Shown here: one piece after another, positions 2,613 through 51,822 of the stretch | Numbering within the stretch: position 1 is the first letter of the stretch | Layout: each line of letters begins with the position of its first letter | Assembly: GCF_030144855.1 (NCBI RefSeq) | Contig: NC_082725.1 | Location: 39,680,001-39,744,000 of the forward strand | Origin: Hypanus sabinus | Taxonomy: Eukaryota | DNA: 64,000 nucleotides | Direction: 5' to 3' | Program-made: the position numbers and the translations under genes | The notes under the pieces: generated by a model | Seen by the model: only the letters and a program-made list of their open reading frames with translations | The model's database searches: none | What the model was told of the DNA's origin: nothing

Positions 2613-3916
2613 TGTATGAAAAAAGGGTGGAGAATGAGGCTAGCAAAAATTGCCCTTGGGCAGCCAGCATGAACTTGGTTTGCTAAATGGTCTCTTCTGG
2701 GCTGTAACCTTTGCGGTTCTTTGGGGAAAAGAGACTAAAGATGGGAAATGTCAAGAATGACTAACTATTTGATATTGTGTTTCATGACTATCCCTAGAGG
2801 CAGTAACATGTAATTCAGAAGATGTGGTGCTATATTCTTCCAGCACACATTGAGCTTTGTTGGAACAATATAGCAGGTTAGAGAGACAGAAGTCAAAGGA
2901 GAAATGGGAATTGACTTACAGGGCAATGAAATCATCTTAGAGTTGGCAACAACATAGTGAATAGGATTGTGTTGCTCAATATTTACAATTCTACAAGATC
3001 AATTTAGGTCGTAGTTTGTCATTTTTTGGTCAAATTTCATCAGTACCCTCTTAACTAAAAAAATTTGAAAAATGATGTGCGAAAATGCCCATTCTGACTC
3101 TCCCTAATTATGTTAACTGAATTAACTGTACAGCAGCATCCCCTTTTTTTCTCATTTCATTAAGGAAAATCAATAATTAGGGAAACATATTTCTACAGCT
3201 CTTCAATAAACCCAACATCTCAACTGTTCTCATTGCCACAATATTCCAATCTTGGAAGCATCTTTATAAATCTTGTACCTTTGAGAGCAATCATGCCTAT
3301 ACTGTATTATATACCAAATAATGCAAGCAGTACAGATTATCCCCAGGTTACAAACACCTGACTTACTGACAATCCCTACATGCAAATGAGCTCCTATATT
3401 ATTAAACTCAGAAGTCCCACCAATACCTTTTGCATGCAGAGCGAATTTTGGATCCAATTATGCACTCTCTTGGAAAAAGCCTTCCATTTACCTTTATAGC
3501 TGTTTTCAGTCCACTTCTACTTAATTACTTATTGTAATAAAGAATTCAATTTAGAATTCACAGATTTAGCATATTTCAAAGAGCTTTAAAGACGTAATAT
3601 GAAAATTGAAAAAAGTCAAGCAAAGAAGATTAGGATCATTAATAAATTCTTGTTCAAAGAAACTGCTACAGTATTGAGGAAAAATGCTTAAACAAATATG
3701 GAAAAAATTACACAAGTAATTCTATAGAATAGACTTCTGACAACTTTAGAATCTGCCACTAACTAAAGGGAAAGCAGTAAAACAAGCTGGATTTAAAGAA
3801 ATTAAGTTTGCAAAGATTGAGAGATTTATAAATGTGGGAGATGTGCTTTAATATGACAGGATATCCTACAGTGGGATAAAGAATGGAAGGGTGAGGGCAT
3901 GAATTTCAGTTACTGA

Positions 3917-4997
3917 ATGACACCTGTCACATTGAGGGTTAATATGAGAGTAGAATTGAGCAAGTTTATCTTTAGACATATGAGCTCTATGTACAATTTT
4001 AAATTGTATTAAAGCATGTTTAGCACATATAGAAGAAGAATTAACCATTTGTAAAATTTTTTCCCATTTTTCTATTGATATATTATATTGAAGTTCTTTT
4101 TCCCATTCTTGTTTAATTCTACCTGATATTTCTGGTTGTATCTTCATAATCATATTATAAATAAAAGCCACTAATCCCTTCTGATAGGGATTTAAGGTAA
4201 AAATCATACCTAAAAAGTCCATTGAAGTTGAATTGGGGAAGGATGTCATTCAGATGTGGCTTCATTGACCCACATGTTTTGGTCATGTCCCACTTTACAT
4301 AACTATTGGAAGGACATATTTGCTACCATTTCCTCAGTTTGGAATATCGATTTACAACCTCATTTTATTACTGCAATTTTTGGTATACCAAATGAGGATG
4401 GTAATCAGTTTTCCCCTTCAATTAGACGAATGATTGCCTTTGTAACATTAATGGCCAGAAGGTCTATATTGCAAAATTGGAAAGCAGTAAATCCTCCTAC
4501 CACATTTCAGTGGCTCTCTCAAACTATTTCTTATCTGAGCTTGGAAAAAATTAGAAGCACTATTTTTGACTCATCAGTTAAATTTGAAGAAACTTGGGGA
4601 CCATTCATTCGACATTTTCATATGAATTAATTTGACCTCTCCCAGACCTTCTCTCTGTCTATTCTTGTTCTGGTATAGAGTTTTTGGCACTATCATATAC
4701 AAATAAACTGTTATTATTGCCCATGTTAGTTCACTTTAGTATTTTTTTTTCTCAATATATATTTTTTGCTTGTATTTTTACAATTTTTTCTTTTTCTTTT
4801 GACGATTATTCTTATTTTTTTCATACAATTATTATAGACTTGATTGATAATGTACTATGTTTTTCTGTTGATATCTTAATAGGATATTGTTATCCTATTA
4901 TTAATTCAATTTCAAGTCTTATGCATTTATAACCTATTCATTATTATGTTATGTTTTTTTATATATATGAAATTCAATAAAAAGATGGAAAAAGAAA
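3917..4997 (+). mobile_element. 5'-truncated, 5'-inverted L1 (twin priming)
   Basis: 3917-~4243 is ORF2 on minus (..SSSICAKHALIQFKIVHRAH..CDRCHS); 4244-4630 continues on plus (DVASLTHMFWSC..); 16-bp TSD GAATTTCAGTTACTGA at 3901-3916 and 4998-5013; same family as the L1 at 38850. Confidence 0.9.
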
Positions 4998-6204
4998 GAA
5001 TTTCAGTTACTGATTAAGCAATGGCAATTACAACTGATTTAAAGACAAAAAAATTACAGAAGACCCATTGAATTCTACGGCGTTGACTTTACTTTTATGG
5101 AATTCATTTGCAGTCAAGTGTCAATTCAAATAATGATCCCTGGGAGCTTTAATGCCATCAAGCTGCCTTAAGGCAGCTGATCAAAATGAATTTTCAGATG
5201 GCCAACCCCAGGAAGGGAAGAAGACAAATTTCTGAATTATAATTTAAACACTTTGCAAAGCGCATAACGTTAGAACCTTAACAAGGATTAAAAATATTTT
5301 TATAATAAATAAACTTCTACAATACATCCTACAAAATTAATAGGCCTTTAGAGTTTACTGTGTAATGATTACAGCTTACTAAATGAAAATATTACTGATG
5401 CTCAAAGTCTGAAATAAAAAGCAGAAGACATTGAAAACATTTTGTTGATTGGGCAATATCTATCATGGAGATGAGTTAAAATTTCATGCTAATGATCTTT
5501 CATCAGATGTCTCATTCTGATGTTCAGTGACCAAAACACAAACTATTGCTTTAACAACATACCATATATTTCCCCATCCACCAAGTATTTCTAGCTTTTT
5601 TGGCAATCACAGGATTGCATTTCACTAATACGACATTTTCAGTGTATTTTGCAAGGACAGCTTGCAAATACTTTAAATTCCCAAAATTTCACCAATTTCC
5701 ATTGATAATAGAAGTGGCTGCAAAGCACCATTAACGATAGAGCAGCACCAAATCCCTCAAGAAAACTTGTGGTTTCTGAGTTGAATCACGCATGCATGTA
5801 AATTACTAAATGAGTAACTAAATTATCATTACGTAGTGTAATAATGCCAAACCCTAATGATTTCACTGTCATTAAAATTGTAATATCCAGGCTAATGTTT
5901 TTTTAAACTTAAAGGGCTCAAGGACATGGATCCAAGGTGCATCAGTGAGGACTAAAATAAATACAGAACTTACCCTTAATGATAGAATGGCAAGTTTGCC
6001 AATAGTCAAAGCCATGAGGCTAATGGTAGGGGAGGAAGGGGAGTAATCACTGGGGTAATCAAGTCTAAAGCGATCTCTGCCAGCTGCAGAGCAAATGCAG
6101 CCCATCTCCCAGATATCAAAAAATTTGTGAAATCTTCCACCTCTATAGAACAGGGGCACAAGAATATAAAGTGGAAATTGCAAACACAATTTACTAAAGG
6201 ATTA

Positions 6205-6402
6205 ACACGAGGAAATCTGCAGATGCTGGAAATTCAAACAACACACACAAAATGCTGGTGGAACTCAGCAGGCCAGTCAGCATCTATAAGAAGAAGCACC
6301 GTCGACGTCCTGACGAAGGGTCTCGGCCTGAAACGTCGACAGTGCTTCTCCTTATAGATGCTGACTGGCCTGCTGAGTTCCACCAGCATTTTGTGTGTGT
6401 TG
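6205..6402 (+). mobile_element. Palindromic PLE-derived mini-element containing a hammerhead motif
   Basis: 14-bp TSD TTACTAAAGGATTA (6191-6204, 6403-6416); ~70-bp inverted arms around CTGACGA-AGGGTCTCGGCCT-GAAACGTC. Confidence 0.85.
6306..6341 (+). ncRNA. Minimal type I hammerhead ribozyme motif
   Basis: CUGACGA 6310-6316, stem II, GAAA 6330-6333, GUC triplet 6335-6337, short stem I GUC/GAC. Confidence 0.65.
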
Positions 6403-6821
6403 TTACTAAAGGATTAGCCAGATTAACAATGTCTAGTGATTTTTAAGTAGGTCACTGGTTTTATATTTCAAAGTTTGATGTTGTTTTCTGTTAAACATTA
6501 GCTGAACTTTTTAAAACCAGTCTGGACATTTAAATCTAAGCAGGCTTTTCTTAAAACATACAGCATGTTATTTTTTTAACCCTCCCACAATTTTAAGTGC
6601 CTAAACACCCAGGCTACTTTAATATAATGCAGTGACCTTGATATATTAAGAAAATGTGGAATTTAAGCACTGATCTTTTACAAAGGCTCATCTGGGCCTG
6701 AACTATAAAACACTTCCTTCACACAAAAAGATAATTACCACCTACCTATTAAATTGTCTCAAAATACTTAGGTCACCTTTCTAGAGTGAACAAAATCTGT
6801 TATGTAACAAGCAACAAATAA

Positions 6822-11319: not shown

Positions 11320-11492
11320 TATGGAACTCAGCCAAAACCCTTCAGGACTAGAACAGAAGGGAGCAGAATCCAAAATAAGAAATTAGGTGCTGACTTCCTT
11401 TTCAGTCCTGATTCTCTTTCCCCCCTCCCCCATAAATGCTGCCTGCACTTAATGAGTTTCTCCAACTCAAGATTTCTGCAGAATTTCTTGTC
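11320..11492. mobile_element. Degenerate copy of the PLE-derived palindromic element
   Basis: GGAACTCAGC..AAACCCTTCAGGACT and TTCAGTCCTGA...ATGCTGCCTG..GAGTTTCTCCA..TCTGCAGAATTTCTTG. Confidence 0.55.
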
Positions 11493-12614
11493 ATTACCCA
11501 ATGTAGCCTATTTGTCAGTTGTGTCCTATGTCCCATAGAAACCTAATTCTCTTATAATTTAATCAGTGAAGCATTCAATTGACAACAAAAATTGCTTTTG
11601 GTTCAGGATAAACCAAACTAAATGCAGCTGGTTCAGGATACGTCATATAATCATTATAATTCTTTTCCATCTACTTAGAAGGATGGGGGAAAAAGCACAA
11701 GTCACAATTTACAAGTAGTGTAAAATTGCACAATAAATATGTATATTTCCATTAAAAACAATCTTACACTAGAAAGCAAATCCAGTATATATGTTAATAG
11801 TAGGCCAAGAAATAGGGCACTTGACACTGCATTAGGCCATTTACTGTGTTTAAGAAATTACTTGAAAGACAATATTATATAAACATTTCTTTATATGTAT
11901 TTAAAGTGTGAAGTTACTTTAAGTAAAGAAAGATGGTGAACAGGAGTTTCTTTCCTGCCCAACCCAACCTAGAACCATGAGCTGCAAGATTTCATTAACA
12001 TGACATTTGTGCTGAAACACTGTAATATTAAAATTTCAAATCTATAAATTTCTTGCTTTTCATATAAGTCTCTATCTGTTAGGCAAAACCAAAAACATAT
12101 TTAATATGGCAGGTTTGGATTGTGAGAATACAGTATTTTAGATACTAGACTTCTAAAGAACACAGAAGAATCAAGCTGCTTTACTAAGCTCACTTGCATG
12201 AAAATAACAATATGATTAAGGTGTGTTACATTGGAATAATCCTATAGCATGCATGACATAAGCAAATTGGGGATTAATATGGTCAAATGTTTAAATTTAT
12301 CGGTCTGTGACGATACTGGTACAGGTTTATATTATCAGAACTACAAATACACAAGATAATCAGATTCCTCAGGTAGCCCTGTCTAGATAGCCTCGAGAAG
12401 TTATAAATTAAGATTCTCAGATTTTTTTAAATGTAGTTGAATTTGTTTCTTATAGAAAACTGTAATTGAACAAAACATACAAAGGTGAAATAAAGGATAA
12501 AAGAACTAGAGTAGGCTGTAACACAAATAGCCTTAAAATAGTCACTAAATGGAATATTGGGGTGTCAGGGACAGGTAGCACCTCTGGTGGGGGAACATGT
12601 CACATCCTTTTCAG

Positions 12615-12702
12615 ACAACACACACAAAATGCTGGTGGAACACAGCAGGCCAGGCAGCATCTATAAGGAGAAGCACTGTCAACGTTTTGGGCTGAGACCC
12701 TT
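12615..12702 (-). mobile_element. Single arm of the PLE-derived element
   Basis: ACAACACACACAAAATGCTGGTGGAACACAGCAGGCC...GCTGAGACCCTT; truncated just before the CTGANGA core. Confidence 0.75.
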
Positions 12703-12704
12703 AA

Positions 12705-13215
12705 AGACTCTTTTCAGGCAGTTTTTCCACCTCTGGTCTCCACCTGGCACTCAGCTCTCACCTGTGGTTCCCCATAGCTGTATACATGTGACAGCAACCA
12801 CACCCCGGGCAACGGCTTCGACAAGTCGGCTAAATCAGGTGAGGGTAGCTGACGGGTCTCAAACCCTTGGTGAGATAGGGAGTTGTCTATCCCAGCATAT
12901 GAAGACAGACTCCAGCAGATTGAGTGGACAAGACCAATGGAAGGTCCAATGGTTAAGAAGGCAGTCTCTGCAAGTGTTGTGGAACGCGTAGAGCATGACA
13001 AGACACAGAAGATGTCCTGGTCATCCTCTGTGACTAGTACCATCCCCAGCCATCTCATCTCGTCTTGCCACTGGATCCAGATAGGAATTGGGAAGAGAGT
13101 GAGGCCAACGCTGCGCAACTCTCCCTTACTTAAATCCAAATCAAGCGCTAGTCTCGACACCATCATCATAATGGTGTCGAGGTCTTCATCAATGACGATG
13201 GACGAACAACCAACC
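12705..13215 (+). mobile_element. Unclassified non-autonomous retroelement (RTE-like?)
   Basis: GC-rich island with a structured 5' part and an ACAAC-repeat 3' end; no recognisable intact protein. Confidence 0.35.
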
Positions 13216-15039: not shown

Positions 15040-15955
15040 TGAGATTTTTAAAAAATAGGTATTACAAGGAGGAAGAGCTACCCTTGTCAGCTCGTTCCTC
15101 CCCACTGATCTCCCTCCTGGCACTTATCCCTGCAAGTGTGACAAGTGCCACACCTTCCTCTAGATCTGCTTCCTCACCACCACTCAGAGCCCCAAATACT
15201 CCTTAGAGGTGAGGCAAGATTCCAGCTGCAAATCTCTTAGAGCAATATTTTATATCTAGCACTCCCAATGCAGCCTCTTCTACATTAATGAGACCCGACG
15301 TAGATTGGGGATTGTTTTGTCAAGCTCCTTTGCTCTATCTGCTGGATTTTCCAGTGGTTACTTGTTTCAATTAAATTTCTCATTCCCATTCCAACATGTC
15401 AGCCCATGGCCTCCTCTACTGCCAGAATAAGGCCACACTCAGGTTGGAAGAGCAATAATTCATTTCCATCTGGGTAGCCTCCAACCTGATGGCATGAAAG
15501 CTGAGTTCTCTAACATACAGTAACTTCTCTCCCCAAATTTTTTTTTAATTTTAAATTCCCCATTCTGGTTCCCCTCTCACCAATTCTCTTCCCCTCACCT
15601 CCATCTGGTGTCTCTCCTCCCTCCCTTTCTTCCATGGTACTCTATCAGATTCCTACTTCTTCAGCCCTTTACCTCTTCCACAAATCACCTCCGGGCTTTT
15701 TAACTTAATGCCATCTCCCTCACCCATCTTCCACTTCCACCTCACCTGATTTCATCTATCAACTGCTAGCTTGTACTCCTCCCCACCCCAACACTGATAT
15801 TTTGGCTTCTGTCCCCTTCCTCTCCAGTCCCGATCAAGGGTCTCAGCCCAAAACACTGACTATTCTCATCCAGAGATGCTGTCTGACGTTGAGTTCCTCC
15901 AGCATTTTGCGTATGCTGCTCAGAATTTCCAGCTTCTGCAGAATCTCTTCTGTTT
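15040..15955 (+). mobile_element. Penelope-like element remnant (GIY-YIG region and 3' terminal repeat), possibly Neptune-type
   Basis: Decayed PGTYPCK..KCH...SCKS..IFYI..SQCSLFYINETRRRLG; 3' end 15822-15950 matches the mini-element arm and a decayed hammerhead (CCGATCAAGGGTCTCAGCCCAAAAC). Confidence 0.7.
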
Positions 15956-22905: not shown

Positions 22906-25187
22906 CTGGTGACCAAAAAGTATATTACTGCAAATGTTAGAAAGAATTCATTCATTAATTAATCAATACTGATAGTAACTCTAAACATTTTATGTGACTG
23001 CAACAAAGTCCATGAAACATCTCCATTACACAAGTGTGTTACATGAAAAAAGGCACATTCAAGTACAAACTTTGTATGATAAAAGTTGACGAGCACAAGT
23101 ACTTACTATTGAAGCTACTTTTATGAATGAGTTACGTACTCATATGCTAAATCAACCAGTTCCCATTAAAAAGCCAAGAAATATAATTTATAAAATCAAG
23201 TTATAACCATTTCAAAAGTAGACTACATTGATGCATATTTTGCATATTTTTCAGACACAGTATTATAATTAAATATTACATGAGATTGTGCATTAATGAC
23301 TGTAAGAAATCTTTCAGTCATTAATGTAAAGTGGCAGTGCAGGTATGCAATTTCAAAAGCAAAACACATTACAATTATCTGAAATAGTAGTTAATACCAT
23401 AATATTGGGTTACTAAACAATGAAAATTCCAACCTTCTACCTCATTTCCTTCAGTTGTTAACCCCTTCCACTGTTCTCTTCTATCAACATTAAATTCCAT
23501 TCATCTCCTATGTATAACACTATCAAAAATATTTTAATTCACTCATCTTTACCAGTCTCTCCATATTGATAGACATTACCTTTTGCTTCCTTCATATCTT
23601 CCCCCTTTAATCTGTGCCCTTAAAGATAGTTTTATTTCTAATTTTGCATTTCTAATGAAATGCCTTAAATCTACATGTTAACACTCTCTCTGCAGATGCT
23701 GTCTAGCCTGCTAAGTTACTTCCACCAATTTTGTTTTTTATACAAAAAAATTATAAGTAGCCAGATTGAAATAAACAGAACTGGCAAACATGATCAAAAA
23801 TTCCTAAAGCAGTGATACATAAATATTCCTTTTCTCCCAATTCTGTCTATTATTTTCTCATGCTGGTGATAGCCTGCATGAGGTGTTGAGGCTCAAGAGA
23901 CACTTCCACTGTTTTTTCATTGTGCTGTACTAAGCAAAAGTTAAACAACTTTCTCTGTTCCTACAAAAAAAACATCTCTTCAGCCAGCAGATTAGATGCT
24001 TTCAATATTAAGTAACTGCTTCGGTAGTTTTCAAATAAAACTTCCCCTGTAGACCCCTTAACTTGGTCTATAGTACTATGAGAATCAAGAAATTATACTG
24101 TATATACGATAATCTTGTTCTGTTTTGATTGTAAGAATTATACTGAATTTAATTTCTTATGATATTCCCATAACATATTGAAATTAATGCAAATCTACCA
24201 TTACTAATGAGGCAAGGCTGTTTATGAAGATTCTGATGTTTGAATCCAAGGTTCGTTCAAAAATTAGGAAAGAGGCACAAAACTTGTTGATTTGCAATCA
24301 AGAGTTAATAGAATAGAGGAAAGCCGAACAGGTAGTAATATGGGACTACTAAGCAAAGAGAGTCAAAGGAACAAAGATGGCACCTAGCACAGAACAGCTA
24401 TTTTTATACCACAGAGATTAAAAAAAATCCATTCAAATTTATAGATAAGAGACAACTAATTAGAAAATACTTATTTGAATACTGCAATACCAAGTTAATC
24501 AATGAGAAAGAACTTATTAATTTAATGCAGAACAAAGACACTTCCGGAGCTTTCCAGAAGTGTACTTTGTATAGCCACTAGAGGCATATTAAACTTGCAT
24601 ATACATACAAGAAATACTTAAAATACAAACAGATAATTAATTGTTAAACTGCAAGGAAAATAACATTAAACACATGTAATCTAAGGATTCAACAGTCAGA
24701 TCCAATTCTAGCTGGAAGAACAGCATGGCCCAAACCCATTCCACTCACTTTATCTATTACCTATTGCAACATAAAAAAGTACATTGGTTGGGGCATGCAA
24801 TCTAAGCCAAATTGTAATGCAGGACATTTAGGATACATCTTTTGAATGAGGCATTTACCCTTATAGATGATATGTCCAAACAGCAGTGAAGTTCTCCCAA
24901 GTGGCCTAGCCAATGTAAATTCCTCAATGCAGCTAAAAACAAATTACCTAGCCTTTTATTTTTTTTTGTGTAGAACAGTGTTGTATATGCAATCTGAACA
25001 ATTCTTAACTGTAATAACAACACTTCAGAAAATATTTAATTGGCTTCAAAATGCTCTACCATGTCTCCAGACTCAAGAAAAACACCACATTAATGATAAA
25101 TGCTATTTTCCTTTCCACAACCACTTTTAGAGCTCATTTTCATCGGAAAAACTACCTAGTTCTTTCCCTGCATAAATGAGCAACATG

Positions 25188-28828: not shown

Positions 28829-29543
28829 TTTTGGATAGATAAAATTACAAGCATAGACAATACTTGATTCTTTTTTCAAAGATGTTGCCTGACTTGCTGA
28901 CTATTCTTAATTCTTGCAATACCATCATTGCTCACTCACAGAAACCCCCGTTGAATAATCAGTCAGAAGGAAATGCTCACATTTGAACATAAATAATTGC
29001 AATGAGGGAAAACTAAAAATACAGGAAAGTAAGTTCCTGAATCGTATCATTACCATTTGGTGGTATATCCCTCTCAAATATTTATCACACCAGTGCATGT
29101 TCAGTATTCTGGAAAAGCATTAAATCAAAAGCCACTACACACACATACACGCATACCGTCTTAACCGTCTAAACTGAAATTTCAGAAAACTGCAGATACT
29201 GGAAATCTCAAGTTAAGCAGAAAATGTCGGAAACACTCAGCAGGCCAGGCAGCATTTGCAGGGGGACAATCGTTTGCTGCTCCACAGAACAGATAAGGTG
29301 TGCAACCTGTTTCTGTCAGAACACCGGGCCCGGTTGCGCTCGGACTGGCCGGGGGGAGGCGTGATGGGCAGAGCAGCGCTTCCATCCGCGGTCACGGAAC
29401 CACCGTTAGACCCCGTCTTCGGTTCGGCTTGGTCACGGGGATTCTCACTATCCCCGTGGTGGCCCAAGCCTGCCGAGTGTTTGTTTTCCAGCATTTCCCT
29501 CTGCTGCTTCAGATTTCCAGCGTGGTGCAGGTTGCACACTCAC

Positions 29544-30894: not shown

Positions 30895-32600
30895 TTAGAA
30901 CATAGAAAACCTACATCACGATGCAGGCCCTTTGGCCCACAAAGCTGTGCCGAACATGTCCTTACCTTAGAAATTACCTAGGGTTATCCATAACCCTCTA
31001 TTTTACTAAGATCCATGTACTTGTCCAGGAGTCTCTTAAAAGACCCTATCATATCCACCTCCACCACTGCTGCCAGCAGCCCATTCCACGCACTCACCAC
31101 TCTGGGTAAAAACTTATCCCTGACATCTCCTCTGTATCTATTTCCAAGCACCTTAAAAATGTGCCCTCTCGTGCTAGCAATTTCAGCTCTGGGGAAAAGG
31201 CTCTGACTTTTGATCAGTGCCTCTCATCATCTTATACACCTCTATCAGGTCACCTCTCACCGTCCGTCGCTCCAAGAAAAATAGGCCAAGTTTACTCAAC
31301 GTATTCAACAGTGGCTAGATGGGAGATGCCAGAGAGTAGTGGTGGATAATTGTTTATCGGGATGGAGGCCGGTGACTAGTTTTGGGCCCAATGTTGTTTG
31401 TAATATACATAAATGATCTGGATGATGGGGTGGTAAATTGGATTAGTAAGTATGCCGATGATACTAAGGTAGGAGGTGTTGTGGATAATGAGGTGGATTT
31501 TCAAAGCTTGCAGGGAGATTTATGCCGGTTAGAAGAATGGGCTGAATGTTGGCAGATGCAGTTTAATGCTGAGAAGTGTGAGGTTCTACATTTTGGCAGG
31601 AATAATCCAAATAGAACATACAGGGTAAATGGTAGGGCATTGAGGAATGCAGAGGAACAGAGAGATCTAGGAATAACTGTGCATAGTTCCCTGAAAGTGG
31701 AGTCTCATGTAGATAGGGTGGTGAAGAGGGCTTTTGGAACGCTGGCCTTTATAAATCGAAGCATTGAGTACAGAAGTTGGGATGTAATGCTAAAGTTGTA
31801 CAAGGCATTGGTAAGGCCAAATTTGGAATATTGTGTGCAGTTCTGGTCACCGAATTATAGGAAAGATATCAATAAATTAGAGAGAGTGCAGAGACGATTT
31901 ACTAGGATGTTACCTGGGTTTCAGCACTTAAGTTACAGAGAAAGGTTGAACAAGTTAGGTCTCTATTCATTGGAGCGTAGAAGGTTGAGGGGGGATTTGA
32001 TCGAGGTATTTAAAATTTTGAGAGGGGTAGACACAGTTGACGTGAATAGGCTGTTTCCATTGAGAGTAGGGGAGATTCAAACAAGAGGACATGATTTGAG
32101 AGTTAGGGGGCAGAAGTTTAAGGGAAACATGAGGGGGTATTTCTTTACTCAAAGAGTGATAGCTGTGTGGAATGAGCTTCCTGTAGAAGTAGTAGAGGCC
32201 AGTTCAGTTGTGTCATTTAAGGTAAAATTGGATAGGTATATGGACAGGAAAGGAGTGGAGGGTTATGGGCTGAGTGCGGGTAGGTGGGACTAGGTGAGAT
32301 TAAGGGTTCGGCACGGACTAGGAGGGCCAAGATGGCCTGTTTCCGTGCTGTGATTGTTATATGGTTATATGGTATTCTCATAGAGCATGCTCCTCAATCC
32401 AGGCAACATCCTTGTAAATCTCCTCTGCACCCTTTCTATGGTCTCCACATCCTTCCTGTAGTGAGGCAACCAGAACTGAGCACAGTACTCCAGGTGGGGT
32501 CTGACCAGCATCCTATATAGCTGCAACATTACCTCTCGGCTCTTAAATTCAATCTCACAATTGATGTACCGAATGCTTTCTTAACCACAGAGTCAACCAT
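30895..32600 (-). mobile_element. CR1 3' fragment split by a younger CR1
   Basis: TAGAACATAGAAA tail; the sequence rejoins across 31306/32372. Confidence 0.75.
31307..32371 (+). mobile_element. Young 5'-truncated CR1 LINE with an intact 303-aa RT C-terminal frame
   Basis: FVIYINDLD..KYADDTK..LYKALVRPNLEYCVQFWSP; (GTTATATG)n tail; TSD GTATTC at 31301-31306 and 32372-32377. Confidence 0.9.
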
Positions 32601-36199: not shown

Positions 36200-38772
36200 T
36201 TGTTTCATGGAATCCTGGTTAACCCCTTCCGTTCAGGATGCAGCGATTCAGATCAACGGGTTTACTATACACTGTCAGTCTAGATCTATAGAGTCTTTCT
36301 AAAGCAGAATTGGAGGAGTATGCCTCATGATCAACTCTTCTTGCACAAATATATCAGTGCTGTCCCAATTCTGCTCACCAGACCTGGAATATCTAGCAGT
36401 AAAGTGTTGTCCTTTTTAGCTTCCATGGGAGTTCTGTGGGGTCATTTTGGTAGCAGTTTACATTCCATCTCATCCAATGTCAAGCAAGCTTTAGATGATC
36501 TGAATAATGGGATCAACATGCACAAAACAGTTCACCCTAATGCCTTCACCATCTCTCCAGTCTGAAAAAAATCACTAAGCGCTTACTATCAACAGATCAC
36601 TTGCAATACCAGAGGAAACAACACACTGGACCATTGCTACACCACCATCAATGCCTACTGTGCTATTCCACGCCCTCACTTCAGGAAGTCTGATCACCTA
36701 GCTGTACTTCTACTCCCTGAGTATAGGCAGAGACTGAAGACTGCAACATCAGCAATGTGGACCAAGAAGATTTTGACAAGGGAAGCACAGCAATGCCTAC
36801 AAGACTGCTTTGAATCTGTGGACTGGACTGTATTCAGGGATTCATCTTTGAATCTGGATGAGAATGCTGCAGTTGTTACCAACTTCTTTAAAACCTGTGT
36901 GGATGTGTGCCTACAAAAACTTACTGTACATTCCTAAGCCAAAAGCCGTGGATGAACCAGGAGGCATTCTGGTCTGTGGCATTCAAGACTGGCAACCCAG
37001 GCCTGTAGCAGAAAACCAGGTATAATTTGAGGAAGGCTATTTCAAGGGCGAAGAGACAATTTCAAACGAGGTTAGAGGTGCTATCACAGGACTGCGCAGA
37101 GACTGCACAGGAACACTGGCAGGGTCTGCAAGACATTACTTCCTATGAAGTGAAACCCAATAGTATGAATGACAGTAATGCTTCACTACCAGATGAACTC
37201 GACGCCTTCTATGCATGCTTTGAAAGGGAAAACACAACTACAGCTGTGAAGATCCCTGCTGCACCTGATGACTCTATGATCTCTGTCTCAGAGGCTGATG
37301 TTAGACTGTTTTTAAAGAGAGTGAACTCTCGTAAGGCAGAAAGTCCCGATGGAGTACCTGGTAAGGCTCTGAAAACCTGTGCCAACCAACTAGCGGGAGT
37401 ATTCAAGGACGTTTTCAATCTCTCACTGCTACGGCAGAAGTTCCCACTTGCTTCAAAAAGACAACAATTATACCAGTGCCTAAGAATAATAATGTGGGCT
37501 GTTTTAATGACTATTGCCCGGTAGCACTCATATCAACAATGATGAAATGCTTTAAGAGGTTGGTTATGACTAGACTGAACTCCCGCCTCAGCAAGGACCT
37601 GGACCCATTGCAATTTGCCTATCGTCGTAATAGATCAACAGCAGAAGCAATCTCAATGGCCCTCCACACAGCTTTAGACCACCTAGACAACACAAACACC
37701 TATGGCAGAATGCTGTTCATCGACTATAGCTCAGCATTTAATACCATCATTCCCACAATCCTGATTGAGGAGTTGCAGAACCTGGGCCTCTGTATCTCCT
37801 TCTGCAATTGGATCCTTGATGTCCTAACCGGAAGATCGCAGTCTGTGCGGATTTGTGATAACATATCCTTCTCGCTGATGGTCAACTCTGGCGCACCTCA
37901 GGGGTGTGTGCTTAGCCCACTGCTCTACTCTCTATATACACATGACTGTGTGGCAAGGCATAGCTCAAATACCATGTATAAATTTGCTGACGATACAACT
38001 ATTGTTGGTAGAATCTCAGGTGGTGATTAGAGGGCATACTGGAGTGAGTTATGCCAACTAGTGGAGTGGTGTTACAGCAACAATCTGGCACGTAACGTCA
38101 GTAAGACGAAAGAGCTGATTGTGGACTTCAGGATGGGAAAGATGAAGGAACACATGCCAATCCTCATAGAGGGATCAGAAGTGGAGAGAGTGAGCACCTT
38201 CAAGTTCCTGGGTGTCAAGATCTCTGAGGATCTCAAAAACTTCTATAGTTGTACCGTGCAGAGCATTCTGACAGGCTGCATCATTATCTGGTATGGAGGG
38301 GCTTCTGCATAGGACCAAAAGAAACTGCAGAAGGTTGTAAATTTAGTCAGCTGCATCTTGTGCACTAGCCTACAAAGTACCCAGTACATCTTTAGGGAGC
38401 AGTGTCTCAGAAAAACAGCATCCATTACTAAAGACCTCCAGCACCCATGGCATGCCCTTGGGTAGGAAGGTACAGAAGCCTGAAGGCACATGTTCAGCAA
38501 TTCAGGAATTGCTTCTTCCCCTCTGCCTTCTGACTCTTAATTGGACATTGAAGCTTTGGGCACTACCTCACTTCTTTTAAATATGCAGTATTTCTGTTTT
38601 TGCACGTTTTCTTAAAATCTATTCAATATACATAACTGATTTACTTGCTTATTATTATGTTTTATTATTTTTTTTAAAAACTCTCTGCTAGATTATGTAT
38701 TGCATTGAACTGCTGCTGCTAAATTAACAAATTTCACATCACATGCCGGTGATAATAAACGTGATTCTGATT
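36200..38772 (+). mobile_element. Rex1/Babar-like LINE (APE remnant and RT, frameshifted)
   Basis: NTLDHCY, SDH; RT motifs [43 protein letters not shown]; tail GATAATAAACGTGATTCTGA. Confidence 0.88.
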
Positions 38773-38849: not shown

Positions 38850-41800
38850 GTCTCAAGATGGCGCTTATGGAGTGAAGCGGTTTTAGGCTTTGCTCCAATC
38901 CTTTTACTTTTTTTTAACCTACAAACACCCCCTAATTGATCTTTTTATACCTATTCTAAAGGGGTTTAAACATATGAAATTTTTTTCAACTGTTTGAATC
39001 ATTTTCAACTCGCTGAAATGTCTAAACCAAAGGAATCAAAACAGACGAAAGATTCGTTAACTTTAGAAGCAATTGCGAATCTTATGGACGACAGACTTGG
39101 AAAACTGGAGAGTAAATTAACCGCAAAGCTTTCTACGTTCGATGAAATTTTAAAGACATTTGACGCAAAACTTCAAGCACTTACACTGGATTCACAAAAA
39201 CAACAAGCAAGTATTCTTGAAGAAGCCACTGGCCAGAGAGATCGTATAATTGAAACTTTGCAACAACAGCAACCTTCAACTTCTCAACAGATGGATCGTT
39301 ATAAATCTAAAATCACTGATCTTGAAAACTGCTCTTGAAGACAAAATCTTCGGTTAATTGGGATTCCGGAAAAATTTGAGAATGGCGATCTCACTGTGTT
39401 TTTTCTCCAAATTTTTAATGGATGTCTTTGGCTCAGAAGTACTGGATTCCCCTCTAATAATCGACCGTGCACATCACATTTCTCGTTTTCATTCAGATTC
39501 AAGTTTGAAACCACGACAAGTAATTCTCCAGATCCATTATCCTCATACTGAAGAGCGTTTGATTCGGGCTGCCTGGAAAAAGGGTATGATCAGCTTTCAA
39601 GATTTTAAATTCCGTATTCTGGAAGACTACAGTCCCGAAGTTTTAAGGGCAAGAATGACTTTTAAATCGGTTCTGTTGGAAATTCATCAGGAAGGCTACA
39701 AGCAAGCGCTGTTATTTCCAGCACATTTGAGAGTTACTCTCAAAGATGGAACTTATCGGCTGTTCAAATCTCCAGCGGATGCTCAAAGATTTCTTGAAGA
39801 ATAACATTTTATCGGGTTGACTAATGTAATAATTAGTTTATAGATTTGGATCTTTTATAAAATGATGTTTTTTTTTACGTATGGCTTACATGTATTTTTT
39901 ATATATGGTAAAAGTCCGTTTTTGGTTTATTCTGAGTTTGTTATTTTTTCATATTATTAATCTGTTAGTTTTGAAAGTAATTCATTAGGGTCTTCTTTTA
40001 AGTTCGTATATACTTTTTATATTTTTAACGTTTAAATATTAAGATTTTTAAAAAAATAAAATGTCGTTTCTTCTTCCCGAAAGATCTTAGTGCTTGGAAC
40101 GTCACATCCGTTTTGATGTGTTTGAATAAGTTTAAAGCTTTCTTTTAAAACACTAATACAATATTATTCATTTATGGGTTTTATCGTTTTAATTTTTTTT
40201 AAAAATCCTTTTGTTTGATATATATATATAATACTAATTTTATATTTTAATTTTTGTTATACCAACCCTTTCTTTTAATATGGGTGGTTTGTATCTTTTA
40301 TTCAACTTTTTTTTTTGTTTGAGTTGCCGTCTTGAGACATGGGGGTAATTTTAGTGTTAGATTGCTTGCTTGCCTCTTTTTGGCTTTTTTCCTGGGGTTT
40401 TGAGGGTGGAGGGAGGGCGATTTTTCTTCTTTCTTTTCTTTTTGCTTGCTTTATTCTTAGTTTTGCTTCATGGGCTCATATGAAACTACAAAAATGGTTG
40501 CAGTGCCATAACTTCCGGTTCCTCCTTGAACTTACTTCCCTCTTCTGGATTCATGAGTTCATCTTTTTTTTTAAACCTTATGTGTTAATTGTAATAAATA
40601 TTGTCAATATGGATAAGGTTATTAATTTTGTTTCTTGGAATACTAATGGTTTAAATCATCTGATCAAACGGAAAAAAATATTCAAAGTATTCCATAGAAT
40701 GAATGCTAATGTTATCTTTGTACAAGAGACTCGTGTAAGGAAGGTGGATAGTCAACGCTTTTTTAGGTTTTGGAAAGGCCAACAATGTCACTCGAATTCT
40801 CAAGCCAAAGTAAGAGGCGTTTCCATTTTTATAGATTCTTCAACCTCCTTTATACACCATGAAACAATTTCAGACCCACAAGGTAGATTTTTGCTTATTA
40901 CTGGTCTACTTTTTAATCAAAAAGTAGTTTTAGTTAATGTTTATGCTCCAAACACTGATTGTCCTGAATTTTTTAAGTGTCTATTTACATCCTTTCCTAA
41001 TTTGAATCAGTACAGGCTGATAATGGGTGGGGATTTTAACTGTTGTTTAACCCTTCGATGGATAGATCTAAGCCCACCCAAGTTCTTCCGAATAAACCAG
41101 CCTCTCTTATTAATTCCTTTATGACTGATTCAGCAATTTTTGAAATTTGGCGTTTTTTACACCCCAATGACAAAGAGTTTTCATACTTTTCTCATGTTTG
41201 TCATAATTATTCAAGAATTGATTACTTTTTCATTGATCACCGTTTACTTACAGATGTTATCTGTAATATGACTCTATTACCATTTCTGACCATGCACCTT
41301 TGAAGTTATCTATTAATCTAAATCTTAGAGGTTAAACTCTATTTTATTGCAGGACTTAGACTTTGTTAATTTTATTAAACAACAAATTGATTTGTTTTTC
41401 TCAACAAATTCTACAGCAGAGATCTCTAGTGGAATTTTATGGGACACTTTTAAAGCATTTATTCGTGGACAGATTGTTTCATACTCTGCTGAGTTAGGAA
41501 ACGAACTAATTCTAAAATATTAACATTGGTTGATAAAATCAAAGCAATTGATAAGATTTATTCAGTGACCCCCAGCAAAGAACTTTATAAAGAAAGAATG
41601 GAACTTCAAATGGAGCATAGTTTGTTATTATCCTCTTCGATCGAAAATCAGTTAATTAAATCTAGAACCCAGTTTTACGTACATGGAGATAAGTCTGGCA
41701 AATTATTGGCTAATCAATTGAAAACTGCTTCGGTTAAACGACAGATTACTAGGATTCGTAAACAAGATGGCACTCTGACGATTGACCATAAAGAGATAAA

Positions 41801-44631
41801 TAAAGCCTTTCAAGATTTTTATAATTCCTTATATCAATCAGAATTTGTTGAGGATTCTTCTATAATAGATGAATTTTTAAGGAAATTGAAATAAAAAAGG
41901 CTATTTTTTCAATGAATTCCAGTAAAGCTTCTGGTCCAGATGGCTATACTGCAGAATTTTTAAAATCCTTTTCCTCTATACTTTCTCCTTGGCTTTGTAA
42001 AATTTTTAAAGATGTGTTAATTATAGGCAAATTGCCACAATCTTTTTATGAAGCCTCTATTTCTTTAATTCTTAAAAAAGATAAAGACCCTATTGAATGT
42101 GCATCCTATCGGCCTATATCCTTGCTGAATACAGATTTTAAGGTTTTTAGTAAAATTTTGGCTATTAGATTAGAAAATATATTACCTTGAATCATTTCTG
42201 AAGATCAGACTGGATTTATTAAAAAAACATTATTCATCTTTTAACATTAGAAAATTAATTAATTTTATTTATACTCCTTCACCCAAAATACCAGAATGTG
42301 TCATTTCCTTAGATGCTGAAAAAGCATTTGATAGAGTTGAATGGCCATATTTATTTAAAACTTTGCAGCATTTTAATTTTAGTTCAAAATTTATATCATG
42401 GATTAAATTAATATACTATAAACCCTTGGCTTCGGTTTTTACCAATAATCAAAGATCTCCTTTTTTTCAGTTATTCCTTGGTACAAGGCAAGGTTGTCCT
42501 TTAAGTCCTTTACTATTTGACATTGCTTTGGAACCTTTGGGTATTACTCGTGGGGAGGGAACGTATAAGTTATCATTATATGCCGATGATTTGTTACTAT
42601 GCATATCTGACTCTGAGAGATCTATTCCTGCTATTTCGTCCTTGCTTGCTCAGTTTAGTAACTTTTCTGGTTATAAATTGAATTTTAATAAGAGCGAATT
42701 ATTTCCATTAAATATGCAAGTTCCAATTTATAAACATTTACCATTTAAAGTTGTTACAGATTATTTTACTTATTTAGGTATTAAAATTACTAAAAACATA
42801 AAGATTTATTTGAAGCTAATTTTTTACCTTAAATTGACAAAATTAAACAACTTGTTACCAGGTGTTCTCCACTATCTTTGTCATTGGTTGGTCGAATTAA
42901 TGCTATTAAGATGATGGTATTACCCAAATTCTTATATTTATTTCAAGCATTACCAATTTTTATTCCTAAATCTTTTTTTGATATTATTGACTCCAAAATA
43001 TCTTCTTATCTGTGGCAGAATAAAAACCCTAGACTAGGCAAAAAATATTTACAGAAGCCTAAGAAGGAGGGCGGTTTGGCTTTGCCAAACTTGAGATTTT
43101 ACTATTGGGCAGTTAATATACGATATTTAATATTTTGGACACAAGAATTGACTATAGCTGCTTGCCCACAATGGGTAAATTTGGAATGTAAATCTGTACA
43201 AGACTTCTCATTGTTTTCAATTTTGGGATTTTCACTTCCTTTTTCTTTATCTAAATTGAACAAGCAAATAACTAATCCTATAGTCAAATATACATTGCGA
43301 ATTTGGTTTCAATTTCGTAAATGTTTTGGTTTGAATAAGTTCATGCCCTATAATATCTAACTATTTTTTTCGGCCCTCTTTTATGGATCAAGCTTTTCTT
43401 TTATGGAAAACAAAAGGTATAACATGTTTTCGTGATTTGTTTTTGGATGATAGCTTTATGTCCTTTGAACAGCTATCTAATAAATATAATTTACCTAAAA
43501 CTCATTTTTTTAGATATTTGCAAGTTAGAAATTTTTTGTATAATGAATTACAGTCTTTTCCAAAACTATGTCCATTGGACATTACCGAAAGAATTTTAGC
43601 TCTGAATCCTTGTCAAAAGGGTTTAGTAGCTGTCATTTATAATATGATCATGCAAATACAGCCAGAAGTATCAGAAAAAATTAAGAAGGAATGGGAAGAA
43701 GAATTTCATTGTCTTGTATCCACTGAGCAGTGGGAGAAAATTTTACTATTAGTCAATTCATCCTCTATTTGTGCTAAACATGCCCTAATACAATTTAAGG
43801 TTGTACATAGAGCTCATATGTCTAAGGATAAACTTGCTCAATTTTATTCTTATGTTAATCCAACCTGTGACATGTCATTCTGATGTTGCTTCATTGACCC
43901 ATATGTTTTGGTCTTGCCCTTGTTTGCAAAACTACTGGAAAGATATTTTCAGTATTATTTCAAGAGTTCTGAATATCAATTTCCAACCACATCCTATTAC
44001 TGCAATTTTTGGTTTACCAATGGTGGATAATAGTCATTTATCCTCTTCATCTTGACAAATGATTGCATTTGTTACATTAATGGCTAGAAGATCTATTTTA
44101 TTGAATTAGAAAGAAATTAATCCTCCAACTATATTTCAGTGTTTTCTCAAACTATCTCTTGTTTGAGCTTAGAAAAAATTAGAAGTGTTTTTGATCCTTC
44201 AGTTAAATTTGAAGAAACTTGATCATTTATTCAACACTTTCATATGAGTTAAATTGTCTTTTCCTAAACCTCACTTTTATTATCCTTAATTATTTGGATG
44301 GAGGTTCGGAGTTATTGGCACTACTGTATATATCTAACATTATGCAACAGCCCATGTTGGTTAGTGTTTTTTTTTCTGCTCTTTTTTTTTGTTTTTTTTT
44401 CTTTTTATTTCTTTTGTTCATAAATTAACAAATTTCACATCACATGCCGGTGATAATAAACGTGATTCTGATTTTATAATTTATACATGAGTTTGGGAGG
44501 TTATATATATTGATTATTATATACTTGAATGTCTACTTATACTATTAACTATGTACTCTCAAACTCTTTGTATTCATGTTTCATTTATGTTTGCTTAAAA
44601 ATTAATAAAAAGATTTAAAAAGAAAGAAAGA
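38850..44631 (+). mobile_element. Near-full-length L1 (ORF1 ~39018-39804, ORF2 ~40609-44250; frameshifted)
   Basis: ORF1 coiled coil and IDRAH; ORF2 APE SWNTNGL/QET/GGDFN/SRIDY, RT SYRPISLLN, LDAEKAFD, QGCPLSP, YADD; AATAAA and (AAAG)n tail; 12-bp TSD AAGAAACCAATG at 38838-38849 and 44632-44643. Confidence 0.93.
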
Positions 44632-49498: not shown

Positions 49499-51572
49499 CT
49501 ATATTTGTTAAATAGTATACAGTATTTCAATCCTTTATGAATGCTACATTTTTGAGGATTTGTTCATTACAAAAAGACATTGAATTTACACTTACTGGTT
49601 TCTGTTTTTAAATCTTAAAACTGCAGTGTGTATCTGTATTTAAATTCACTTAAAATCTTAAATTCAGATGCTGCATATCCTTGGCTGTCTTCTATTGAAT
49701 ATGTGTATACAGGTAAACTGAATTGCATTCACTATATAAATAACGTATATAGAACACATTAGAGGCTAATATTCTTGTTAGCTGTATTAATCTATTAGTT
49801 CATCAGTTCAATCTATTATAGTTAACCTCTACAATATAGAGTATACAGAGGGCAATCCTGTCCTCACCTTAGCAGAGATATTCCCTGTATCCTTTCCATC
49901 CCTCCTCCATCTTCCCTGCAACTTAAGACAAGTTTTGACTTTTTATTAGTTCTGCTAAAGGATCTTCAGTCCAAAGCATAAATGTTTCACTTTCCATAGA
50001 TTCTGTCTAACCTTTCCAACATTTTTTAGTTTTAATCTCTGATCTGTAGCTGAGCAGCTTTTAAAAATTTTTTCCTTCACCAACTTCTACTTCCTCCGGC
50101 TAAAGAAATTTGACATGTCCCTGATGACTCTTTACCAATTGCTTTATAGATGCACCCCAAAAAGCATCCTGTCTGCATGCATCACAGCTTGGACTAGCAA
50201 CTGGCCTACCCAAAACACCAAGAAATTGCAGTTATGAAATGCAGCCAAGTCCAATATTCCCTCTGATGAGTCCATTACGCTTCCTGCTGTCTCAGGAAAG
50301 CTGGACATCTGCTTTAAACATAACACTCGATGTGTTCCAAGTGAAATAATAAAATATCTAATGTGTTGACTGTTTGAGTCTCAAGTCTCCTGCTGACTAA
50401 CTTTTTTTATTTATGTACTAATCATCTCTTCCTATTCCATCAAGGAACATTAATATTATTCAGTGGAATGGAAATAAGGACATATTTAAATGCAAATTGC
50501 CATATCAAAATAAGAAAATTGACGTAGATCAATGTGCTAATATATTTGTCAATACCAGTTGCTAACATTAACACTGCTAATAAGTCAGCAAATCAACCTG
50601 AATTATTTATTTAAAGGGCAGAGGAGAGGCTTTGTATCCATGCTATAATAGTGACATTCAGTTCTTATTTTCTTAATTAGAGCTTTGGTATCAATAATGG
50701 TTATACACTGTAGAGCAGCATACAGCAAATGGTTCTTGATGCAATTAGGTTTGCATTAAATGCATTGCATTAAAGTTCTAGACATTTAAACACTCTTGTA
50801 GTCACTTATCTCTAGCTTTACTACATTAGAAATATACGTTGCTACTGATGCTCTCAAATGAGTAATCCCTTTTAGTCCATTTCTTCTTGTCCTTCAAAGT
50901 AGGCAACTGAAAATTTATACCATTTATTAGATTAATTTAGTTCATTGGTGTCTATCCCCTTCCATGAGAGCTGTTAACCTCAAAGAATACAACTGTATTG
51001 GACTTGATTAGCAAGCTTAAGATAAAGAAACTCCTAGGAAACAGCGATCATAATAGGTTAGAATTTGCCCTGCAGTTTGAGCAGATGAAGATAAAATGGG
51101 CTGTACCATTATTACAGTTTGGTAAAGTTAATTGGAGATCATGATGGAGGAGCTGGCCAAAATTGATTTGAGTGGGGCACTAGCAGGGATGACAGTAGAG
51201 CAGCAATGGCTGGAATTTCTGGGCATGATTTGGAAGATGCAGGATTGGTTCATCCCAAAGAAGAAGCAATCTAAAAGGATGAAGCAAATGTGGCTGACAA
51301 GAGAAGTCAAAGACAGCAACCAACAGAAGACAAATAAAGAAATGATAATGAATAAAACAAAATATGAAGGTAATCTAGCCAATAATATCAAATAGAATAT
51401 CGAAAATTTTTCAGATAAATAAAGAGTAAAAGAGACAAGAGTGGACATAAAACAGCCGGGAAATGATGCTTGAGAGGAAGTAATGGAGAGCAAAGAAATC
51501 ATGGATAAACTGAATAAGTATTTTGCATCAGTCTTCACTGTGGAAGACATCAGCAGCATGCCAGAAGTTTAA

Positions 51573-51758
51573 CAACACACACAAAATGCTGGTAGAACAC
51601 AGCAGGCTAGGCAGCATCTAGCATCAGTCCTGACGAAGGGTCTCAGCCCGAAACGTCAACATCGCTTCTCCTTATAGATGCTGCCTAGCCTGCTGTGTTC
51701 TACCAGCATTTTGTGTGTGTTGTTGTTACAATTCTGGCATCTGCAGATTTCCTCGAGT
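51573..51758 (+). mobile_element. Palindromic PLE-derived mini-element with a hammerhead motif
   Basis: 15-bp TSD ATGCCAGAA(G/T)TTTAA (51558-51572, 51759-51773); inverted arms; AGTC-CTGACGA-AGGGTCTCAGCCC-GAAACGTC at ~51626-51657. Confidence 0.85.
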
Positions 51759-51822
51759 ATGCCAGAATTTTAAGTGTGTTGGAGGGGCAGAAGCAAGTTT
51801 CGTCACTATTACTAAGGAGAAG

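Follow-up and report, generated by a model that had tools for sequence, protein, structure and literature searches.

What kind of element leaves behind a short palindrome with a ribozyme motif at its centre? The question is raised by a fold-back insert in a 64,000-nt stretch of the Hypanus sabinus genome (NCBI RefSeq assembly GCF_030144855.1, contig NC_082725.1, positions 39,680,001 to 39,744,000 of the forward strand; hereafter the window, numbered from its first letter). The insert occupies 6205-6402, lies between two copies of a target-site duplication, and consists of two long inverted arms around a loop that holds a minimal hammerhead motif. An earlier note on this DNA assigned it to a high-copy, retrozyme-like family of palindromic, self-cleaving mobile RNAs derived from Penelope-like elements (PLEs). 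The reading that we favor, with a probability of about 0.75, keeps the PLE origin and gives up the palindromic family. The insert would be a single retrotransposition product of a PLE, or of a short RNA from the terminal region of a PLE, in which a 5'-truncated terminal unit, from the last ~100-130 nt of the element, stands head-to-head with an inverted, 5'-truncated copy. The unit in the insert would then be the hammerhead motif plus a body of ~65 nt, heavily 5'-truncated, with an optional 32-nt tail at one end and a duplication of variable length around the whole.

Anatomy of the insert and of its relatives in the window

Direct reading of the region 6100-6520 bears out the dimensions given in the earlier note, a 198-bp insert with a 14-bp duplication and arms of ~70 bp. 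The two copies of the duplication agree at 14 of 14 positions (Table 1), though its length is best given as 12-14 bp, because its first TT may equally end the right arm. An inverted-repeat search returned arms of 72 nt each (6237-6308 and 6333-6404), 97% complementary, with a 24-nt spacer between them. The outer ends are not alike: the tail at 6205-6236 aligns with tails at 51723-51758, 15920-15955 and 29185-29215 in the alignment of copies, and the other arm is without one. A 17-nt similarity between the flank at 6172-6188 and the element at 6227-6243 was dismissed as being at chance level. Within 6300-6341 of the window, the left arm closes with ACGTCGACGT, which forms a perfect palindrome of 10 nt.

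Relatives of the insert were found by a BLASTN search of the insert against the window, by direct reading and by one alignment of the copies. The unit that they repeat consists of the core, a body of ~65 nt and an optional tail of 32-36 nt. Its 3' ends fall into two classes, the short end and the short end plus the tail, and its 5' ends are variable. Target duplications in the family are 12-14 bp, 13 bp with one mismatch, and 8 bp long.

The second duplication-flanked copy claimed in the earlier note is real, at 51571-51758. Its 13-bp duplication (51558-51570 and 51759-51771) matches at 12 of 13 positions, and its arms (51571-51619 and 51674-51722) are identical at 49 of 49 positions, private variants included. 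The two fold-backs differ in design. In the first (copy 1), the antisense arm ends at A15.1 in hammerhead numbering, and the tail is on the arm opposite to the one that is contiguous with the core. In the second (copy 2), the antisense arm is only 49 nt long and ends AGATGC, and the tail is on the core-contiguous arm.

The decayed or partial copies listed in the earlier note all exist, in a mixture of forms, but the one at 12615 is not a decayed copy: it is a 95-bp solo unit within a perfect 8-bp duplication. It starts AGTC, and its hammerhead core, which has TTTA in place of the CTGACGA box and A for G12, is predicted to be dead. The longer remnant at 15040-15955 has a mutated core at 15829-15860; its last ~130 nt are the terminal unit, and it ends near 15953. 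Both this remnant and the copy near 49945 continue upstream of the core. The window thus contains two fold-backs with different junctions and opposite tails, one solo unit, and truncated or longer copies, so palindromy is not a trait of the family as the earlier note had it.

Table 1. Coordinates of the insert, its hammerhead motif and related copies in the window.
Feature	Position	Strand	Basis or remark
Left target-site duplication, TTACTAAAGGATTA	6191-6204	.	79% A+T; 14/14 match to 6403-6416
32-nt tail, this end only	6205-6236	-	3' extension of the minus-strand unit; no partner on the right
Left arm: antisense terminal unit, A15.1 (ACGTCGAC...) to short 3' end	6237-6308	-	72-nt inverted pair, 97%
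Minimal type I hammerhead motif	6307-6340	+	Sequence reading and descriptor match
Helix I, 3 bp	6307-6309 / 6338-6340	+	Hammerhead numbering
C3-A9 box	6310-6316	+	Hammerhead numbering
Extra unpaired A between A9 and 10.1	6317	+	Hammerhead numbering
Helix II, 4 bp, CUCG loop	6318-6321 / 6326-6329	+	G10.1 pairs with U in copy 1
G12-A14	6330-6332	+	Hammerhead numbering
A15.1-C15.2-G16.2-U16.1, loop-less	6333 (A15.1), 6334-6335 (C15.2-G16.2), 6336 (U16.1)	+	Palindromic ACGU
C17	6337	+	Predicted cut between 6337 and 6338
Right arm: sense unit running on from the core, short 3' end (...GTGTGTGTTG), no tail	6333-6402	+	Inverted pair and copy alignment
Right target-site duplication, TTACTAAAGGATTA	6403-6416	.	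14/14 match to 6191-6204
Weak fragment with an internal deletion that joins the core start to CTGAGTTCC	11342-11377	-	E = 0.048 against the remnant at 15040-15955; by eye
Solo 95-bp unit, ends at short 3' end	12615-12709	-	Perfect 8-bp duplication CTTTTCAG (12607-12614 / 12710-12717)
Longer 5'-truncated remnant	15040-15955	+	Decayed frameshifted frame, then ~300 nt untranslated, mutated core, body, tail
Old 5'-truncated body fragment	23694-23734	+	BLASTN, reading, alignment
Old 5'-truncated copy, body plus tail	29185-29255	-	BLASTN, reading, alignment
Decayed second-subfamily copy (..TGTTT.A.T..CCATAGAT..), extends upstream of core	49945-50035	+	BLASTN, alignment
Second fold-back (copy 2)	51571-51758	+	BLASTN, reading, alignment
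Copy 2, antisense short arm	51571-51619		
Copy 2, junction	51620-51626		
Copy 2, core	51630-51657		Followed by sense body
Copy 2, 36-nt tail	51723-51758		

The hammerhead motif and its prospects for cleavage

The loop of copy 1 and its edges (6307-6340) read GTC-CTGACGA-A-GGGTCTCGGCCT-GAAA-CGTC-GAC. The conserved boxes of the hammerhead, C3-U-G-A-N-G-A9, G12-A-A14, A15.1, U16.1 and H17, are all present (6310-6316, 6330-6333 and 6336-6337); they are also intact in copy 2, at 51630-51657, and mutated at 12684-12709 and 15829-15860. The loop of helix III is absent and positions 15.2 and 16.2 are complementary (GAAA-CGTC, 6330-6337), so ACGU could pair between two molecules. T6329 makes 10.1-11.1 a G-U pair in copy 1; the copies at 51630, 12684 and 15836 have GGG...CCC, and an alternative register of helix II (A-U/G-C/G-C) is possible in copy 1. 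Copy 2 has an intact core, but A instead of G at position 1.1, by which the first pair of helix I is lost.

Minimal hammerheads of this kind are carried by the terminal repeats of PLEs and are described by two boxes, an unpaired base between positions 9 and 10.1, a G10.1-C11.1 pair and a palindromic 15.2/16.2 (PMC4209133). Helix III is absent or tiny in them and helix I is short. Their activity in vitro is low and confined to dimers, and they occur as thousands of single copies as well as in opposite-strand pairs 100-700 bp apart (PMC4209133). Copy 1 resembles them (Cervera & de la Pena 2014, PMC4209133) in its CUGANGA and GAAA boxes, the unpaired base after A9, the lack of a helix III loop, the palindromic ACGU and the short helix I; the dispersal of single motifs in huge numbers and of opposite-strand pairs 100-700 bp apart is also common to both. 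The core in the loop, the ACGU palindrome and the cut predicted after C6337, as put forward in the earlier note, would thus agree with published features. However, helix II here is 4 bp with a tetraloop and that of the schistosome consensus 7-8 bp, and copy 1 has G10.1-U for G10.1-C and a helix I of 3 bp.

How specific is this match? A purpose-written descriptor of the loop-less minimal hammerhead, which requires complementary 15.2/16.2, was run on the window and on 300 simulated (Markov-2) windows. It matched once in the window, at the copy 1 site (best parse: bulge of 1, stem II of 4 bp, loop of 4 nt), and had 0 matches in the 300 simulated windows, which argues that the core is not a chance match. 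Rfam returned no hammerhead match, either at the gathering score or, for 6150-6450, at E<=10. Rfam hammerhead models expect a helix III hairpin. The Rfam miss is to be expected of a motif without that hairpin and does not exclude a minimal hammerhead. Exact-pattern scans for the core or the arm found 0 loci in metagenome contigs (scanned twice) and in viral contigs, and a full-text literature search with strings of the sequence found no relevant paper. Rfam matches to microRNA (miRNA), psbJ and sRNA models were put down to the long hairpin alone. The best of these weak matches were to miRNA models: the fold-back at 6267-6374 scores 38 bits (E = 1.5e-06) against mir-515 and less against other miRNA models, a false lead due to its long, perfect hairpin.

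It is another matter whether copy 1 would cleave. The 198-nt plus-strand RNA is predicted to fold into a single long hairpin at -138.5 kcal/mol, and the minus-strand RNA into one at -147.6 kcal/mol. A15.1-C17 is buried in the 72-bp stem, and enforcing helices I and II costs ~11 kcal/mol. Having no loop, helix III can form only with a second molecule, and swapping domains would mean opening the 72-bp stem, so we rate copy 1 as inactive; on these folds, self-cleavage of its RNA is unlikely, and any function of the motif would belong to the transcripts of active elements. The core would be present in the insert simply since each PLE terminal repeat carries one. Any action of the core would be expected in the multimeric transcripts that active elements produce, in dimeric form and probably with the help of protein. 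The hammerhead of the Anolis PLE cleaves only with protein and is dispensable for insertion in vitro, and no RNA-seq reads end at its cleavage site (PMC11167929); dimer cleavage of minimal hammerheads is cited in a passage of PMC6765202. The native unit holds two overlapping palindromes with different centers, ACGT in helix III and GTCGAC across the cleavage site, and two RNAs that paired with each other through GTCGAC would do so at the expense of the active dimer.

Origin of the fold-back

PLE insertions show strong 5' truncation. Often they are joined at the 5' end by an inverted copy, itself 5'-truncated, and often just one of their ends bears a tail of 30-40 bp (Craig et al. 2021, PMC8557442). 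In vitro, the PLE protein of Anolis cleaves and extends both strands of an A+T-rich target (Frangieh et al. 2024, PMC11167929). It starts reverse transcription at two internal sites whose spacing equals the tail, and the PAc protein is predicted to form a dimer (PMC11167929). The insert shares with such complex insertions (PMC8557442, PMC11167929) the 5' truncation, the adjoining inverted and 5'-truncated copy, the one-sided tail, the duplication of variable length and the A+T-rich target, and its two classes of 3' end match the two start sites. What sets it apart is its extreme miniaturization: the partners are ~70-130 nt, and the result is a palindrome of the size of a miniature inverted-repeat transposable element (MITE), centered on a ribozyme motif. 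As judged from the sequence, each structural element of the insert matches published PLE features, with T6329 as the sole departure in copy 1. The derivation from PLEs proposed in the earlier note is thus supported by the variable duplications, the one-sided tail of 32-36 nt and the inverted, 5'-truncated partner.

How could such an insertion fold back on itself? In the mechanism that we propose, a PLE ribonucleoprotein would nick both strands of the target and reverse transcription would be primed on both, on one strand from the short start site and on the other from the long (tail) start site. The two antisense cDNAs would then be joined near their 3' ends through a microhomology of 2 nt, the GT at 6307-6308 that is common to both segments, and the fold-back copy would be a dead-on-arrival by-product. 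Two independently primed antisense cDNAs would account for copies 1 and 2 alike, which fits the two-strand extension seen in vitro. We infer that the fold-back is made anew at insertion, because junctions and tail-bearing arms differ between the two copies and because contigs from other organisms' runs have joints at many positions. In these contigs, opposite-strand joints connect 6301-6315 with 6350-6369, and same-strand skips lead from 6228-6263 to ~6307; fold-backs with many different junctions therefore exist.

In the twin priming of L1, 5'-inverted insertions arise from two different parts of one RNA and no palindrome results. The insert has in common with 5'-inverted L1 copies an inversion during target-primed reverse transcription, with both nicked strands as primers. 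Unlike in L1, one region would here be copied twice, each time from a proper internal start site of reverse transcription. A more ambitious version of this mechanism can be drawn, which we offer as a speculation that is probably wrong in at least some part. In it, fold-backs would record target-primed reverse transcription carried out symmetrically on two strands by a dimeric PLE ribonucleoprotein, with one start site per protomer (hence a tail on either arm) and a cDNA joint that tends to fall at the hammerhead palindromes (ACGT / GTCGAC) or beside them. The module of ~96-130 nt from the hammerhead to the start site would in addition be a discrete PLE parasite resembling a short interspersed nuclear element (SINE), and not an outcome of random truncation.

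Several observations weigh against a one-off PLE product. One group of them concerns parentage, which no search tool confirmed. In the remnant at 15040-15955, the three forward frames of 15059-15520 hold a Cys-rich ..YPCKCDKCH.., then ..AIFYI. and ..LFYINETRRRLG.., ..HGLLYCQNKATLRLEEQ.. and ..LGSLQPDGMKAEFSNIQ with a stop, spread over frameshifts. We take this layout to be the C-terminal CCHH plus GIY-YIG endonuclease of PLEs. The endonuclease is a putative one, read from GIY...YIG-like motifs that were spotted by eye, and the remnant has no reverse transcriptase part. Pfam searches with five stop-free pieces of it found nothing relevant and no GIY-YIG, and the ESM Atlas had no usable match to the one piece submitted. 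No intact PLE was found among the 10 open reading frames put through Pfam, out of 19 in the window that are at least 130 aa long; those with matches encode reverse transcriptase or AP-endonuclease of the type of long interspersed nuclear elements (LINEs). The LINE remnants themselves lie at 31382-32290, 37476-38027 and 40339-43880, with RVT_1 at 31382, 37476 and 42363 and an AP-type endonuclease at 40339, and none of them is PLE-like.

The other group concerns propagation. The arms of each fold-back have private variants in common (e.g., A6364/T6277, in ~10% of the aligned depth), which would be explained equally well if one copy had served as template for the other or if there were a palindromic master. 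Two contigs of another organism's run span a junction of the copy 1 type, so this arrangement recurs or propagates, and the 6307/6357 joint recurs in several contigs. AGTC stands at or close to the start of three young copies, a pattern that could point to a discrete short RNA and not to random truncation. A propagating palindromic subfamily is accordingly possible.

These same four points are what speaks for the earlier note's proposal of a dedicated, non-coding and retrozyme-like family of palindromic mini-retroelements, in which the fold-back RNA is the template of transposition and the central hammerhead is functional. A few head-to-tail joints of the ~96-nt unit in the contigs of other genomes also fit it, as does a preprint arguing that the retrozymes of animals are PLE derivatives of a non-autonomous kind (10.64898/2026.07.22.740005). 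We nevertheless hold this proposal to be unlikely. The two fold-backs in the window are unlike in junction, loop size and tail placement, they coexist with a solo unit and with truncated or longer copies, and the tail-bearing strand of copy 1 has the core in antisense. The hammerhead of copy 1 does not look like one kept functional either, with A15.1-C17 predicted to be buried in the 72-bp hairpin, a helix I of only 3 bp and a G10.1 that pairs with U. As to retrozymes, the non-LTR retrozymes of metazoans (Cervera & de la Pena 2020, PMC7229834; Li et al. 2026, preprint 10.64898/2026.07.22.740005) are, like this family, short non-coding hammerhead sequences related to PLE terminal repeats and dispersed as monomers. 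However, their definition calls for tandem repeats arranged head-to-tail and for circular RNAs, and at this locus the pair is inverted; Tandem Repeats Finder found no tandem array of the unit within the window. The insert is not a retrozyme in the defined sense, and "retrozyme-like" is best dropped. The same preprint argues that short vertebrate hammerhead repeats, one chondrichthyan example included, derive from PLE terminal repeats, and reports that in most PLE insertions 5' truncation has left a single terminal repeat.

Two further explanations would make the palindrome in other ways. A single cDNA might have snapped back at the 5' end of the RNA and primed its own copying, in place of two-strand priming. 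Such hairpin self-priming would suit the identity of the arms (49/49 in copy 2, 97% in copy 1) and the tail of copy 2, which is on the core-contiguous arm. In copy 1, however, the core-contiguous arm stops at the short site, and the 32-nt tail is on the opposite arm. A cDNA copying itself cannot gain a tail for which it has no template, which excludes snap-back for copy 1, and we regard it as improbable as a general account. Still less credible, and in our view very nearly negligible, is a DNA transposon of the MITE type with terminal inverted repeats and a core that resembles a hammerhead by chance. Long inverted arms, a flanking duplication and the silence of Rfam on hammerheads are what one would expect of it. 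Yet a single family with duplications of 8, 13 and 12-14 bp excludes a MITE of the transposase type, which the earlier note had named as the alternative to look out for. The ends are also asymmetric, with 32-36 extra bases on one side only; a solo, non-palindromic unit has its own duplication; the unit stands at the 3' end of a longer element; and a chance core is at odds with the empty simulated windows. Set against these alternatives, a PLE terminal insertion made by two cDNAs is the explanation that we prefer.

Abundance of the unit and what it implies

Words of the element occur in public runs under many organism labels. At a likeness of at least 80%, each of the three largest runs has 38,000-74,000 matching contigs and each of two smaller runs 2,800-4,800, and the aligned contigs are mostly 90-95% alike; a raw-read run of another organism had only 4 matching reads. 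None of the runs listed with the element is recorded as RNA, and the alignments gave no pile-ups of begins or ends. The unit family is therefore very abundant and is found in runs labelled as several other organisms, in line with the high copy number that the earlier note predicted. A second subfamily (..GTCGACTGTTTATTCC..) is visible in the loose ends. Its consensus has A for G12 and G16.2, at CpG sites, which suggests ordinary decay.

Some features of these contigs should not be read too closely. Contig depth profiles are unsuited to ranking the parts of the unit, and the absence of listed differences at 6304-6336 was dismissed as an artefact and not taken as a sign of core conservation; a difference counts only if it is ~31 or more letters away from where a piece ends, and almost every piece starts at 6307. 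The flanking sequence on either side of the insert (6150-6204 and 6403-6450), which is unique, appears at low depth and with only 1-2 differences in contigs of three other runs, so that close relatives or the same species are among the public runs. Contigs break at the repeat, so this flank coverage says nothing on the presence of the insertion in those runs.

What does the locus add? It is no new class of element: the minimal hammerheads of PLE terminal repeats, insertions that are 5'-truncated and inverted, and one-sided tails have all been described. It is a very compact, young and duplication-flanked example of a PLE terminal insertion, and the added value is modest, consisting in the argument from tail placement for two-strand priming. 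The presence of the tail on either arm offers a simple genome-wide statistic with which models of the PLE integration step can be told apart. In practical terms, a fold-back of ~200 bp can pass for a MITE or for a hairpin like that of a microRNA, which is a warning for miRNA annotation in this genome, and a very abundant repeat family is to be masked as PLE-derived in this genome and its relatives.

A few minor observations concern the surroundings of the unit. In the copies that extend upstream of the core, a pyrimidine-rich tract ending CAG or TAG precedes helix I (15808-15828 and 49925-49955), and in other genomes the consensus of the loose ends is likewise rich in T ahead of 6307, with CA at its end. 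The tract resembles a 3' splice acceptor and recalls the intron of Penelope in D. virilis, the 3' end of which has been placed at the 5' boundary of helix I (PMC4209133). The host sequence of copy 2 (51500-51570 and 51759-51800) looks like a LINE reading frame (..LNKYFASVFTVEDISSMPE..). Immediately to the left of copy 2, 28 nt (51543-51570) resemble the element's own reverse-complemented tail, maybe by chance or through a preference of the endonuclease for tail-like targets.

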